Shown piece by piece: positions 40,182-59,293 of a stretch of 64,000 nucleotides of DNA. The translations under genes were made by a program, and so were the position numbers. The notes under the pieces are model-generated. The model saw only the letters and a program-made list of their open reading frames with translations. It was not told the origin of the DNA and did no database searches. Position 1 is the first letter of the stretch. Every line of letters starts with the position of its first letter. The stretch lies in sequence record PP712906.1; one strand, given 5' to 3'.

Positions 40182-40189
40182 AAAAAGTG

Positions 40190-40227
40190 TTTAGAACGAA
40201 ACGTGCTGCTGTATAATGAGCAGCACG
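40190..40227 (+). promoter_or_regulatory. sigma70-type promoter for dsbA-33-59, with the -10 box in the loop of a 9-bp inverted repeat
   Basis: GTTTAGA, 16 nt, TATAAT (40212-40217), flanked by CGTGCTGCT and AGCAGCACG. Confidence 0.7.
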
Positions 40228-40263
40228 AAACAACGACATTGAACAAAACATATTGAGGTAACG

Positions 40264-49730: not shown

Positions 49731-50187
49731 CGAATTTGATTTTGCAAACGGCGAAGGTGTTCGATTGAGCATCTTCGTTTCGGGCTGTGAGCACCGCTGT
49801 GCGGGCTGCTACAACGAATCGACGTGGGACTCGAACGATGGTATTGATTTTACCGAAGAAACGCTTAGAGACGTTCTGACGAGCTTAGAACAGCACGATG
49901 GTTTGAGTCTCACGGGCGGGGATCCGTTATACCCGAGCAATCGCGAAGCGATTTTGCGAATTTGCAAAGCAGTGAAAGAACGCTATCCCGACAAAGACAT
50001 TTGGATGTGGAGCGGGTACAAGTTATCTCATGTTTATCATTTAGAGATAATGAATTATATTGATGTTTTCATTGATGGACGTTACAAGAGACATCAACCA
50101 ACGCAGAAAGCGTGGCGCGGCTCTGACAATCAAATATTGTACGTTCGGGTAAATGATGAATTAGTTATTGACGAAGAGAGAAATTAA
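49711..50187 (+). CDS. nrdG: Anaerobic RNR activase (radical SAM)
   Basis: FANGEGVRLSIFVSGCEHRCAGCYNESTWD (CxxxCxxC), GLSLTGGDPL, WRGSDNQ. Confidence 0.95.
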   Translation: MKYQKINEFDFANGEGVRLSIFVSGCEHRCAGCYNESTWDSNDGIDFTEETLRDVLTSLEQHDGLSLTGGDPLYPSNREAILRICKAVKERYPDKDIWMWSGYKLSHVYHLEIMNYIDVFIDGRYKRHQPTQKAWRGSDNQILYVRVNDELVIDEERN

Positions 50188-52925: not shown

Positions 52926-52932
52926 TTAAAAT

Positions 52933-52954
52933 GCCTCGTTTTCGGGGCTTTTTT
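52933..52954 (+). terminator. Terminator
   Basis: GCCTCG-TTTT-CGGGGC-TTTTTT. Confidence 0.75.
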
Positions 52955-53005
52955 ATGTTTATCGTATCGTGATGCCGTGTAATAATAAGACACGGAGGTT
53001 ATATT

Positions 53006-55644: not shown

Positions 55645-55651
55645 AAAGTGG

Positions 55652-55680
55652 TTGCGTTGTCGGTGTGACTTGTGTAATAT
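55652..55680 (+). promoter_or_regulatory. sigma70-type early promoter
   Basis: AAAAAGTGG-TTGCGT-17 nt-TAATAT, then the leader CATCGACAACGAAAAGAGAATATTATTATG. Confidence 0.7.
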
Positions 55681-55712
55681 ACTCACATCGACAACGAAAA
55701 GAGAATATTATT

Positions 55713-55850: not shown

Positions 55851-56245
55851 ATTTCCAAACTTTCATGTACAAATGGAAAAGATTTTCATTTGATTTCAAC
55901 AATTACGCAGTTGAGAAGCAACGCGGGTTAGTCGGGGTTGTTGACTTTGTGATGAAGAAACACTTCACGCATCGAGTATATGATCGATTCTGTGCTGCTG
56001 AATTCTCGATTCTACGTAGAATGTTGTATCATACTGTTAACAAACACTTAGGTGAAGTTCTGTTTTGGTACTACAGCACTGATAAGCGTGTACTTGCTAT
56101 CAAGCGTGAAGATATTTTCATCATCATGCAACGTGGTATCACGGGTTGTATTTTGATCACTACGGTATATCGTAATGAACATAAGCAAAACTCTGATAAG
56201 TTCTTTTTGATTGACATAAGCAGAAAGCAAAATGAAGCAGATTAG
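55847..56245 (+). CDS. Hypothetical protein (132 aa)
   Basis: Coupled ORF with an HFTHRVYDR motif. Confidence 0.65.
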   Translation: MNFQTFMYKWKRFSFDFNNYAVEKQRGLVGVVDFVMKKHFTHRVYDRFCAAEFSILRRMLYHTVNKHLGEVLFWYYSTDKRVLAIKREDIFIIMQRGITGCILITTVYRNEHKQNSDKFFLIDISRKQNEAD

Positions 56246-56477
56246 ACTTGGTGACTTCATTGAAGTCACTGAAAGACTTGACCAAGAGAGCTTTTTTGGT
56301 CAGTTAATTGATATTGCACCGTGTCTATGGGCACGTGGTGATTTTCTACGACTTGTCGATGACGCAGGTAATGAAGTTCAAGTGAACACTGTGAACATCG
56401 ACATGATTAATGGCACTGTTGTGAGCGAAATCATTCGCAACGCTCATGGCTTTATGTATTGTGAGGAAAAGATTTGA
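56232..56477 (+). CDS. Hypothetical protein (81 aa)
   Basis: Overlapping ORF in the early operon. Confidence 0.6.
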   Translation: MKQIRLGDFIEVTERLDQESFFGQLIDIAPCLWARGDFLRLVDDAGNEVQVNTVNIDMINGTVVSEIIRNAHGFMYCEEKI

Positions 56478-56917
56478 AAGGTTACGTATTTGTAAATCGC
56501 TACTGTAAAGGTATTCAGGCTGGCATTCAAGGCGCTCATGCGTTGCTACGTCTTGCGCGTAAAGCAGAAAATCCGGTTTTCAACAAATGGCTAAATGACC
56601 ACGAGACGATTTGTGTTCTGTCTGCGTCTGGTCACGACCATCTTGAAGAAATCGAAAAGACCATTCGTGAAATGAATGTTGTAGAAGACATCACGTTTTT
56701 TCAAGAAGAAGGTTTACATCACTCTCTAACGGGTGTAGCATTCATTGGTGACGACACGCTAATGAAAGTTCAAGCCGAAATGAAAGAATGGCGCGAACTT
56801 CGTAAAATTGGCGAAGGTCCGAAGCGTCGAGACTTCGACTCAGATATGTTCTACAAGTACGGTCGAACATATGAACTTGCAAAATACTTAGAGGGGTTTC
56901 ATTCTCATCATGGATAA
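56474..56917 (+). CDS. Peptidyl-tRNA hydrolase 2 (Pth2)-like protein (147 aa, TTG start)
   Basis: GIQAGIQGAHAL...KWL...TICVL...LEEI...FFQEEG...LTGVAF follows the Pth2 layout (AQ.AHA, W, K.VL, DAG, T..A). Confidence 0.55.
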   Translation: MKGYVFVNRYCKGIQAGIQGAHALLRLARKAENPVFNKWLNDHETICVLSASGHDHLEEIEKTIREMNVVEDITFFQEEGLHHSLTGVAFIGDDTLMKVQAEMKEWRELRKIGEGPKRRDFDSDMFYKYGRTYELAKYLEGFHSHHG

Positions 56918-57140
56918 CTTAAATCTTAAATTGACTACTGCTTCTCGTTTTGAAGAATTGATGACGCGCCCTGGCGTCATCGTCAAGAACAGCTCTTCGG
57001 GTCCTGAATACATCACGACTGTTTACGATAAAGGTGAGTTAATTGCCGAACGTGTCCTGTACGTATCGCAAGCAGAGCATTTCGAGCTACAACTTCCTGA
57101 AGCAGTAAAGGCAGTTCGAAAGCCTAGTAAACTGCCGTAA
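56910..57140 (+). CDS. Hypothetical protein (76 aa)
   Basis: Overlapping ORF in the early operon. Confidence 0.6.
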   Translation: MDNLNLKLTTASRFEELMTRPGVIVKNSSSGPEYITTVYDKGELIAERVLYVSQAEHFELQLPEAVKAVRKPSKLP

Positions 57141-57176
57141 AAACTGTTTAACAACTAACTTTGTGAGTGTAATATT

Positions 57177-57377
57177 ATGAAATCTAAAGGTTTTACTCTG
57201 ATCGAATTGATAGTCGTGATTGTGATTTTAGGTGTTTTGGCGTCAATCGGCGCAGGTGCATTGGGTTTAGGTCAAACTGCATCGTACACGACTCAACCGC
57301 AATCAGTGACATATGAAATTGATGGTCAGTTGATGCAATGTACTCCTGTGCAATCTGCATGGGACGATGATTTTTAA
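57177..57377 (+). CDS. Type IV prepilin-like mini-protein (66 aa)
   Basis: MKSKG/FTLIELIVVIVILGVLASIG: class III signal peptide with Gly-1, Phe+1, Glu+5 and a hydrophobic helix. Confidence 0.75.
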   Translation: MKSKGFTLIELIVVIVILGVLASIGAGALGLGQTASYTTQPQSVTYEIDGQLMQCTPVQSAWDDDF

Positions 57378-57386
57378 AGGTAATTG

Positions 57387-58286
57387 ATGAAAAACTACTT
57401 GCAACTATGTACTGAAATTCTCAACGAAGGTGATTTTCTTGAGAATCGAACAGGCACAAACACTGTTAGCGTGATTTCGCGTGAGCTTCGCTGGGATTTA
57501 TCGAAAGGTTTCCCGTTACTGACGACTAAGAAAATGGCAACTAAAGCCATCTTCGGTGAACTTCTATGGTTCTTGAGTGGTTCGGGACTGATCAGCGACT
57601 TGCGCAAATACACTGAGCTTTCAGACGAAGATTTCTGCATTTGGCAGCAAAATCTCGACGAGCTAAACGAGCGTGCAAAGAAAGCAGGTATTGTTCGAAA
57701 TGAAGACGATCTCGGTTATGTTTACGGTAAAGTATGGCGTAAGCGTCTATCTGTGACTGCTGACAAAGAAGTGACTGAGTTCGATCAGATTCATCAATTG
57801 CTGTGCGATATTGCAGCGGTTAAAGAAGACCCGACGCAAAGTGCGCAGCGTCGCATGATAGTTGAAGCATGGGACCCGTACTTCCACACTGAAAGCAACT
57901 CGGTTGACGTAGCTCTACCGCCGTGTCACTATGGCTTTCAAGTGTTCGTGCGTAATGGTAAGATCAGTCTGAAGTGGAATCAGCGTTCAGTTGACACATT
58001 CTTGGGTCTGCCGTTCAATATCGCATCGTATGCACTATTGGTTCACATTCTAGCACAGCTAACTGGCTTGAAAGTAGGTGAACTGATTTTCTCTGGTGGT
58101 GATGTTCACATTTATGAAGATCACATTGTGCAGGTACTGAAACAATTGCGACGTACTCCGCGTGAGTTACCGCAAATTCAACTACCTGAATTTGATACGT
58201 TGTCACAATTGTTGACTAAACGTGCAAGCGACTTTGTTGTGTACGACTATGATCCGTACCCAGCACTAAAAGGTAAAATGTCATGA
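57387..58286 (+). CDS. td: Thymidylate synthase (no intron)
   Basis: NRTGTNT, FPLLTTKK, GELLWFLSG, GYVYGKVWR, RRMIVEAW, ALPPCH, QRSVDTFLGLPFNIASY, GDVHIYEDH. Confidence 0.97.
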   Translation: MKNYLQLCTEILNEGDFLENRTGTNTVSVISRELRWDLSKGFPLLTTKKMATKAIFGELLWFLSGSGLISDLRKYTELSDEDFCIWQQNLDELNERAKKAGIVRNEDDLGYVYGKVWRKRLSVTADKEVTEFDQIHQLLCDIAAVKEDPTQSAQRRMIVEAWDPYFHTESNSVDVALPPCHYGFQVFVRNGKISLKWNQRSVDTFLGLPFNIASYALLVHILAQLTGLKVGELIFSGGDVHIYEDHIVQVLKQLRRTPRELPQIQLPEFDTLSQLLTKRASDFVVYDYDPYPALKGKMS

Positions 58287-58477
58287 TCAGCAAAACCGAT
58301 TATTTTGAACTGAAAACAGGTACGCCAATCATCGTGATTGAGCGTATTGACACAATCGACGGTGAGCTTCTAAAGCTCCCGTTCAGTAAAGTTGTTGCCG
58401 CAGATGATCCGAATATCAGCGAATCGTTAGCTGACGGTAAAATTCACTATCTTTTTGACTTCGAAATAGGTGAGTAA
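58283..58477 (+). CDS. Hypothetical protein (64 aa)
   Basis: ATGA-coupled ORF. Confidence 0.6.
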   Translation: MISKTDYFELKTGTPIIVIERIDTIDGELLKLPFSKVVAADDPNISESLADGKIHYLFDFEIGE

Positions 58478-58479
58478 TC

Positions 58480-58686
58480 ATGAACGTTGGTGAGTTCGTA
58501 GAAGGGTTGTTGACATTAATGATATATGGTATCATTGCAGTTTGTCTTATTCTCGTACTGTCAGTTGGCGGGCTTATCTTCGGAACGTGGCTCATCATTT
58601 CGGGTCATACAATCGCTGGGTGGGTTGTTTCTGTTGTCTCAGCGATTATTTTTGCTTTCATATGCGCATTAATGAGGAATTTGTAA
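58480..58686 (+). CDS. Small two-helix membrane protein (68 aa)
   Basis: Almost entirely hydrophobic. GGTGAG site. Confidence 0.65.
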   Translation: MNVGEFVEGLLTLMIYGIIAVCLILVLSVGGLIFGTWLIISGHTIAGWVVSVVSAIIFAFICALMRNL

Positions 58687-58976
58687 TGTCTTTACACATT
58701 TACGTAGAAGTTGACACCAACGACGGTGATTATGTCGGCGGTCTAACCGCAGCATCAAGTGAAGAAATCGAAAGATTTGAAACACTTGTTCATCTTTCGG
58801 GTGATAGTCTAGCGAGTTGGACAGAAGGCGAATGCCAAGACCGCCCGAATTCAGAAGTATACCCGCAGTTTAGCGAAAATGACATCGAGTTCATTTCCGA
58901 TAAAATGCCCCACTGTGAATACGGCTTTCACACCGTTGAACAAATTAAAATTGTTGATGTGTTGAATACGCTATGA
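58686..58976 (+). CDS. Hypothetical acidic protein (96 aa)
   Basis: TAATG-coupled start (MSLHIYVEVD), after GAGG. Confidence 0.65.
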   Translation: MSLHIYVEVDTNDGDYVGGLTAASSEEIERFETLVHLSGDSLASWTEGECQDRPNSEVYPQFSENDIEFISDKMPHCEYGFHTVEQIKIVDVLNTL

Positions 58977-59293
58977 TCAATGAAATTCTAGCTTCAAGCA
59001 AGCGAATCGACAACGGTCGAACTGTTAAAGACGTTCATATGAGCGTTGTTGAAGAAGTAGGCGAACTAGCAACTGAAGTTCGCGTCAAGTACGGCACGTC
59101 GTACAAAAACGCTGACGTTGACGGCATTCTGGGTGAAGCAGTAGACGGGATTTTGTGTCTCGTTGATCTGATTTACGTTGATAACCCGAACATCACTGAA
59201 GCTGAAATCATGAACGTTGTTCGTAACAAGCTCGCCAAATGGGAGCGCAAAGAAAACGAACACAAAACAAAATCTGAACAAATGGTGAAATAA
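58973..59293 (+). CDS. MazG-like NTP pyrophosphohydrolase
   Basis: VVEEVGELATEV...GILGEAVDGILC (EExxE...ExxD motif). Confidence 0.8.
   Translation: MINEILASSKRIDNGRTVKDVHMSVVEEVGELATEVRVKYGTSYKNADVDGILGEAVDGILCLVDLIYVDNPNITEAEIMNVVRNKLAKWERKENEHKTKSEQMVK

Follow-up and report, generated by a model that had tools for sequence, protein, structure and literature searches.

The 64,000-nucleotide stretch of sequence record PP712906.1 analysed here (the window) contains a gene of 66 codons plus stop, running from an ATG to a TAA at 57177-57377 on the + strand, whose product opens with a type IV prepilin signal and is predicted to have none of the body of a pilin. This mini-prepilin is the ortholog of KVP40.0030 and a member of phrog_13280, a phage family of unknown function that it matches from end to end (E 1.9e-43, 147 bits, residues 1-66 against positions 1-67 of a profile of 67). 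The patterns of substitution among its relatives indicate that the gene is real and that purifying selection acts on its protein. We tentatively propose, with somewhat less than even confidence, that the protein is processed by the host prepilin peptidase PilD and enters the type IV filament machines of the host as a stub pilin, blocking or altering them.

The source of the window, which the first-pass annotation, made from the sequence alone, had taken for a lytic T4-like phage, is a virulent T4-like vibriophage of the KVP40 type. Positions 56000-59000 match Vibrio phage TCU-VP03-AIR1 at 100% identity and KVP40 (Straboviridae, Schizotequatrovirus) at 99.3%. The resemblance of the gene to pilin genes is not a new observation, as it has already been annotated. 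A Pfam match to pilin is given in the KVP40 record, ORF231 of ValKK3 is labelled PulG, QD01_029 is labelled PilE, and the UniRef cluster carries the name prepilin-type domain protein. A 2026 paper on ValKK3 also gives the pilin match, with no analysis of it (PMC13142089). What distinguishes the KVP40.0030 family is that its members have only alpha1N, the N-terminal part of the pilin helix, that they have a conserved Cys-bearing hairpin of their own, and that the gene has a fixed place beside td, the thymidylate synthase gene.

The signal, the missing pilin body and the conserved hairpin

The type III signal peptide is defined by a short, hydrophilic leader ending in Gly or Ala, followed by 20-25 hydrophobic residues, usually with Glu at +5 (PMC10191384). 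The mini-prepilin has these features. Its leader peptide, MKSKG (residues 1-5; 57177-57191, + strand), is short and basic and ends in Gly-1, and cleavage by prepilin peptidase is predicted after residue 5. Next comes an alpha1N-like hydrophobic segment, residues 6-29 (mature 1-24; 57192-57263, + strand), with F1, E5 (E10 of the precursor), G14 and a Gly at mature position 22; its second half is rich in Gly and Ala. An open reading frame (ORF) with a prepilin-like product and a class III signal (basic leader, Gly-1, Phe+1, Glu+5, hydrophobic helix) had been described in the first-pass annotation, and both are there. The ORF is intact, and its product scores 36.3 bits against Pfam PF07963 N_methyl (cut-off 21.2, E 3.4e-9) and 36.6 bits against TIGR02532 (cut-off 16.3), in alignments that span residues 2-25. 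This ORF is also the sole site of the prepilin pattern (Gly, an aromatic or aliphatic residue, Ser or Thr and, further on, Glu) in a six-frame scan of the 64 kb. The signal is above chance and, judged by its residues, is a complete one of the short-leader kind found in type IVa pilins and in type II secretion systems (T2SS).

Type IV pilins and pseudopilins share a lollipop architecture, in which an alpha1 helix of about 50 residues (alpha1N followed by the C-terminal part, alpha1C) is packed on a globular head (PMC10191384). The 66 amino acids (aa) of the mini-prepilin are laid out differently. Past the hydrophobic stretch, which extends to about residue 29, there are some 37 residues, mostly polar. 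Two AlphaFold2 runs, with 4 and 9 family sequences as input and a mean predicted local distance difference test score (pLDDT) of 67.5 and 68.8, gave the same arrangement: a helix at residues 8-28 (pLDDT up to 93), an unstructured linker, a single hairpin with strands at 44-48 and 51-55, and a disordered tail. As modelled, the protein lacks both the alpha1C helix and the globular head, the latter having been reported missing on first reading of the sequence. The domain models for pilins lead to the same place, since none aligned anything past residue 28. The full-length models for GspG, PpdD, GspH, PilA and ComG aligned residues 2-28 alone, with scores far under their cut-offs. The protein thus falls outside the T2SS major pseudopilins (GspG, TIGR01710: 26 bits against a cut-off of 88.85, residues 4-28 only) and outside the GspH/FimU type (TIGR01708: 23.5 bits against a cut-off of 80, residues 3-25 only). 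The C-terminal 33 residues found no match among PDB sequences up to an E value of 10.

Three parts can be recognized beyond the hydrophobic segment. The linker, residues 30-43 (57264-57305, + strand), is variable and rich in Gly, Thr and Gln, and has both the lowest model confidence and the highest non-synonymous share. It is followed by the conserved hairpin motif, residues 44-58 (57306-57350, + strand), with a single Cys, C55. Last comes an acidic tail, residues 59-66 (57351-57374, + strand), which ends in Asp-Asp-Asp-Phe and belongs to certain lineages only: it is present in the window, KVP40, VH7D, ValKK3, D484 and the family member P0009, and missing from QD01, nt-1, CZ01 and P0006.

Conservation is concentrated in the signal and in the hairpin. 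Down to about 45% identity, positions 4, 5, 6, 7, 8, 10, 19, 50, 55 and 56 of the window's protein are invariant in all nine members compared. In mature numbering the first of these are K-2, G-1, F1, T2, L3, E5 and G14; the others are G50, C55 and T56 of the hairpin, where positions 48, 53, 54 and 57 are also common to at least seven of the nine. Mature position 22 is Gly in the KVP40 clade, and P0030 and P0036, the most distant members, have the canonical Pro there. In type IVa pilins and pseudopilins the helix is broken at positions 14 and 22. The ratio of non-synonymous to synonymous differences per site (pN/pS) is 0.75 for the linker, 0.51 for the hairpin and 0.39 for the N-terminus, with synonymous sites saturated.

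Selection on the protein is seen at the level of whole genes too. Pairwise dN/dS (non-synonymous to synonymous substitution rates, by the Nei-Gojobori method) ranges from 0.04 to 0.31, and the clade of KVP40, VH7D, QD01 and nt-1 has a deficit of non-synonymous changes with binomial p from 8e-5 to 2e-9. Between the window and nt-1, for example, 19 of 53 changes are non-synonymous, against an expected 75% (p 2e-9). By tblastn the mini-prepilin is found in 35 phage records, all of Vibrio phages and in 28 cases at full length, and no stop or frameshift interrupts the ORF in any of the 35. Seven more phages (the D48x group), which match weakly by tblastn, have a syntenic ORF of 65 aa that aligns from end to end at about 50% identity.

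The limits of the family were set by a profile search of 1.84 billion representative sequences and a second search of 5.8 billion proteins. Nine clusters scored at least 87 bits; the next matches among the 5.8 billion proteins, generic prepilins, scored 58 bits or less. As delimited by these searches, the family is small and confined to phages. No full-length bacterial or archaeal relative was found in 185,579 species represented by one genome each. A bacterial source for the whole protein was considered and rejected, as the matches in Pelagibacter and elsewhere are ordinary pilins of 128-183 aa that share the N-terminus only. Residues 1-26, for instance, are 81% identical to an orphan Vibrio pilin of 183 aa (L097). 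One member comes from other surroundings: P0030 lies on a metagenomic contig among small ORFs adjoining N4-like RNA polymerase genes, in an early region. A 73-aa member with the same hairpin motif and two Cys is encoded at L013:3113-3334, on a contig with N4-like RNA polymerase genes; neither DNA nor protein searches found a relative of the contig L013 among isolated phages.

Promoter and expression

Early promoters of T4-like phages, as described by Nolan et al., have GTTTAC at -36 to -31, a tract rich in GT ahead of -12, an A at -11 and a T at -7 (PMC1524935). A site with the sequence features of such a promoter is present at 57146-57175 (+ strand). It is comprised of GTTTAA at 57146-57151, an 18-nt spacer and TAATAT at 57170-57175; the GT-rich GTGAGTG precedes TAATAT, and a single base separates TAATAT from the ATG of the mini-prepilin gene. 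Both hexamer blocks are identical in the window, KVP40, VH7D, ValKK3, QD01, nt-1 and CZ01, and the alignment of these seven phages shows free variation in the spacer and at synonymous positions of the genes on either side. The promoter is probably functional, and in the KVP40 clade it probably feeds td.

Counting from T(-7) at 57175 puts the predicted start of the transcript at about 57182, five bases inside the ORF. The first-pass annotation had cautioned that a promoter abutting the ATG might yield a transcript without the start codon, and had called the ribosome-binding site weak. Both observations are sound: read from the sequence, the Shine-Dalgarno-like element, a GAG at 57165-57167 (+ strand), 9 nt before the ATG, is weak. 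The wider doubt over expression is partly answered. Transcripts from the local promoter probably do lack the start codon, but selection acts on the protein sequence in the KVP40 clade, which indicates that the ORF is translated there, presumably from upstream transcripts. Because the predicted start of the local promoter lies inside the ORF, the mini-prepilin of this clade would be translated, at a modest level, from read-through of upstream early transcripts. The distant relatives do not have the abutting promoter. In these the gene abuts or overlaps the upstream ORF or its stop and has a stronger, purine-rich ribosome-binding site.

Sites like this promoter occur on the same strand in three more intergenic gaps of the window (40182-40263, 52926-53005 and 55645-55712). 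Two of the three carry an identical nine bases around the -10, a 9-mer count that is not significant, being reached by 15 of 100 shuffles. A second site with the noted promoter pattern, at 50032-50061, is inside an ORF and was dismissed as chance. Two other candidate elements were rejected: a terminator at the hairpin 57344-57364, which is no better than shuffles and is not kept in QD01 or nt-1, and an RNA element in 56800-57700, where Rfam gave a single sub-threshold chance match.

A proposed stub pilin and the alternatives

Proteins with prepilin signals are inserted into the membrane by the signal recognition particle (SRP) and Sec, the leader staying in the cytoplasm, and prepilin peptidase cuts after the Gly (PMC10191384). 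Glu5 then forms a salt bridge to the adjacent subunit's N-terminal amine, which is believed to drive docking into the filament as it grows, and the tip-capping pilin is the subunit that has no Glu5 (PMC10191384). For a mere membrane anchor Glu5 is unnecessary. In V. cholerae the ratio of minor to major pilins tunes pilus dynamics (PMC13249403).

We propose that the mini-prepilin would follow this route. SRP/Sec would insert it into the inner membrane and the host prepilin peptidase (PilD/VcpD) would cut after Gly5. What would remain is a stub pilin of 61 residues: alpha1N with F1, E5, G14 and G22, a short periplasmic linker, and the Cys-bearing hairpin. Such a protein would keep the residues for docking into a filament but not the alpha1C and head that form the filament surface. 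As G-1, F1, E5 and G14 are invariant while alpha1C and head are missing, it would be expected to dock and not to extend. As a subunit that is non-productive or alters the surface, it would enter at least one host type IV filament machine, be it the mannose-sensitive haemagglutinin (MSHA) pilus, the chitin-regulated (ChiRP) pilus or the T2SS pseudopilus. That the hairpin and its single Cys are conserved points to a specific contact in the periplasm, and the hairpin would give specificity for a partner there. The pay-off would be an altered cell surface during infection, most plausibly the exclusion of pilus-dependent competitor phages. A more specific form of the proposal, which we think rather improbable as it stands, is that these are chain-terminating stub pilins: consisting of alpha1N only, they would dock via Glu5 at the base of the growing filament and stall or break it, the Cys hairpin would lock onto a component of the machine in the periplasm, and the family would be one case of a general, independently evolved strategy.

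Several observations weigh against the stub pilin proposal. The receptor of KVP40 is OmpK, not a pilus. This leaves no place for self-exclusion through removal of the receptor, and the benefit has to lie in the exclusion of other phages or in some different effect. Low expression in the KVP40 clade is suggested by the geometry of the promoter and the weak ribosome-binding site, and a search for transcriptomes or proteomes of KVP40-like phages found none. The models for GspG, PpdD, GspH, PilA and MshA all reach residues 2-28 only, at 21-26 bits, and an N-terminus of about 25 generic residues is too unspecific to name the target machine. Confidence in the structure models is moderate, and a search of the predicted fold against the PDB gave no match at E <= 0.001, the best being fragments of 17-19 residues.

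There are precedents for phage proteins of this kind. Sztanko et al. (Cell Rep 2026) showed that prophage-encoded mimics of FimU become part of the Pseudomonas pilus and stop phages that bind its tip; their database search found four groups of PilA-like proteins in virulent phages, one of them truncated to about 60 residues, and for the truncated proteins they proposed incorporation or inhibition of assembly (PMC12952977). P-FimU, from F10-like Pseudomonas phages, and the mini-prepilin are alike in being phage-encoded and in having a prepilin signal, and by analogy the mini-prepilin too would enter the host type IV pilus pathway and exclude other phages. P-FimU is, however, a full-size minor pilin with a globular domain, expressed from a prophage, and the pilus stays functional. 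The mini-prepilin is a headless protein of 66 aa from a virulent T4-like phage of a Vibrio host, and the sequence relation between the two is limited to the signal. The truncated PilA-like proteins of six virulent Pseudomonas phages are closer in kind, being similar in size, consisting of the N-terminal pilin segment only and belonging to virulent phages. They are of a different family and host, and the KVP40 family has the Cys hairpin and the fixed place beside td as features of its own. The text of that paper names no Vibrio phages (PMC12952977).

Among bacterial proteins the closest in format is Geobacter PilA-N ('Geopilin domain 1'; PDB 7tgg, 9egp and 2m7g/6vk9), which gives the best sequence matches in the PDB (E 1.5e-4 to 9e-3). 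Both proteins are short, with about 61 mature residues, and have no globular head. The match is limited to the signal and alpha1N, and PilA-N has a helix that is long and continuous and a head protein encoded by a separate gene, whereas the helix of the mini-prepilin stops near residue 28, with no evident partner to supply a head. The mini-prepilin is thus not part of a Geobacter-type split pilin (PilA-N plus PilA-C), as its helix ends at 28 and it is flanked by td and by a 76-aa ORF that has no signal. This upstream ORF (56910-57140, + strand) was considered as a Geobacter-like head protein and rejected, as it has no signal peptide and belongs to no family. Over the first 25 or so residues the mini-prepilin is near-identical to Vibrio MshA-type pilins and to T2SS GspG, with matches to MshA (PDB 9lab) and TIGR01710; unlike the mini-prepilin, these proteins have 134-183 aa, with alpha1C and a globular domain. 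Finally, Aqs1 of phage DMS3 and similar PilB binders (PMC13436744) have the same presumed outcome, the disabling of type IV filaments and exclusion of competitor phages, but they are cytoplasmic, bind the extension ATPase, have no prepilin signal and bear no sequence relation to the mini-prepilin.

Does the signal have to mark a filament subunit? It might serve only as a device for delivery and anchoring, by which a small periplasmic hairpin, with its single Cys and in some lineages the acidic tail that ends in Phe, is shown at the outer face of the inner membrane to a target unrelated to type IV filaments. In that case the protein would be akin to the small early proteins of T4-type phages that are anchored in the membrane and have a periplasmic role, in superinfection exclusion or in lysis timing. 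We give this explanation a minor but appreciable probability. The hairpin is the best conserved part outside the signal, which argues for a specific partner; the tail past the hydrophobic segment resembles no pilin, the Gly/Ala-rich second half of that segment makes release from the membrane conceivable, and KVP40 does not use pili. A plain anchor, however, would have no need for invariant G-1, F1, E5 and G14 or for Pro/Gly at 22 at about 45% identity, a charged Glu in a membrane anchor is costly unless it is used, and family searches found no likeness to known periplasmic effectors or to defence and anti-defence families. Retention of E5 is also compatible with docking by an extra functional subunit, one built into host pili without stopping them, which would alter or mask the surface bound by other phages. 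This is the principle of P-FimU, which is incorporated with pilus function kept and tip-binding phages blocked, and the truncated phage PilA-like proteins might, according to the same authors, be incorporated and present no phage-binding sites (PMC12952977). The probably low expression would suit the stoichiometry of a minor subunit. We nevertheless consider an extra subunit distinctly unlikely. Without alpha1C and a head, the head-to-head contacts made by all known filament subunits of lollipop architecture (PMC10191384) are impossible; even the short Geobacter pilin retains its full-length helix, together with a separate head protein, and no candidate for a head partner with a signal peptide adjoins the gene.

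The remaining explanations turn on expression. A small, cheap protein with a perfect peptidase recognition site could act by substrate competition alone, occupying the prepilin peptidase so that host prepilins stay unprocessed. High expression would be required for this, yet the gene has a weak ribosome-binding site and its nearest promoter is placed so that transcripts would lack the start codon, and titration of PilD leaves selection on E5, G14 and the C-terminal hairpin unexplained, so that we regard it as very improbable. Less probable still, to the point of being scarcely credible, is that the ORF is no longer translated in the KVP40 clade and that the stretch is the 5' leader of a td mRNA made from the abutting promoter. 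The predicted +1 at about 57182, past the ATG, the weak Shine-Dalgarno sequence and the perfect conservation of the promoter blocks would all agree with a leader. The strong deficit of non-synonymous changes within that very clade, as between the window and nt-1, would not, and neither would the intact frame in all 35 phage records or the lack of any RNA family match.

Neighbouring genes, other short phage prepilins and implications

In every T4-like relative the gene order is a PTH2-like hydrolase, an ORF of 75-77 aa, the mini-prepilin and thymidylate synthase. In the window the left neighbour is the 76-aa ORF, an ortholog of KVP40.0029 that is identified as a constant neighbour by synteny in the relatives; an ORF of 75-77 aa takes the corresponding slot in D484, L009, L010 and L014. 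Its product gave no match in Pfam or PADLOC, and the PADLOC defence models matched neither the mini-prepilin gene nor either of its two left neighbours. The right neighbour is td (57387-58286, + strand), whose ribosome-binding site overlaps the stop codon of the mini-prepilin gene. The two genes adjoin in L008, L009, L010-L012 and L014 as well, and their adjacency is kept in Schizotequatrovirus, Mylasvirus, the D48x phages and three metagenomic T4-like lineages. The slot falls within a block of primase, dUTPase, DexA and td, that is, among early genes of nucleotide metabolism.

Some further features of this region may be recorded. The 147-aa 'hydrolase' at 56474-56917, two genes upstream of the mini-prepilin and kept in all relatives, has a weak match to PTH2 (peptidyl-tRNA hydrolase) that is above threshold (24.6 bits against a cut-off of 23). 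Just upstream of this gene, and on the opposite strand, ValKK3 (L004:1-418) has a homing endonuclease gene, ORF234, which the window and the remaining relatives lack. The metagenomic T4-like relative L014 (4222-6099) has its thymidylate synthase called in two pieces with a GIY-YIG, I-TevI-like ORF between them, the layout of td intron and homing endonuclease known from T4. Two genes downstream of td, a 68-aa ORF (58480-58686) encodes an extremely hydrophobic product with 2-3 membrane spans and no family match. The record of Vibrio phage V07 (MT135025.1) is 349 kb long, about 100 kb above all other KVP40-like genomes; the extra length is possibly an assembly artefact or a real expansion.

Short prepilins are also found in other phages. 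Several unrelated prepilin families of 43-100 residues have their genes in the replication or early modules of large virulent phages that infect Vibrio, Aeromonas, Acinetobacter and cyanobacteria. When IMG/VR was scanned, 143 viral stretches proved to have an N-terminus of this type. Of the best 80 of the 143, 21 have products no longer than 100 aa, as judged from a crude ORF call, and their tails are unrelated. From their sequences, prepilins this short look like a recurrent feature of replication modules in large virulent phages. Individual cases in IMG/VR include mini-prepilins of 76-91 aa with unrelated two-Cys tails (L021:3001-3276, L052:3001-3249, L046 and L088), which adjoin DNA ligase, clamp-loader-like and NadR-like genes on viral contigs of 57-292 kb; examples beside such genes include contigs of 168-291 kb. 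One such short family is also present in isolated phages of Synechococcus, Acinetobacter, Aeromonas and Vibrio, with related genes in Synechococcus phage BUCT-ZZ01, Acinetobacter phages MD-2021a and Acibel004, and Aeromonas phages Asfd_1 and PX29. Among the matches in the 5.8 billion proteins, dozens of prepilin-type proteins of 58-61 aa occur in metagenomes and metagenome-assembled genomes, with labels such as Candidimonas and Chloroflexota, and very short pilins may be commonplace in bacteria too.

If the mini-prepilin is only a membrane-anchored peptide with another target, it would be one more small early phage protein of obscure role. If it is a stub pilin, virulent T4-like vibriophages would shut down or re-dress the type IV filaments of their host (MSHA and chitin-regulated pili and the T2SS pseudopilus) within minutes of infection, by means of a peptide of 61 residues. 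This would bear on phage-phage competition in marine vibrios and on attachment, secretion and DNA uptake by infected cells. It would bear, too, on the minimal determinants for the recognition of a pilin, its extraction from the membrane and its docking, for which a natural alpha1N-only subunit with invariant F1, E5 and G14 would be a ready-made probe.

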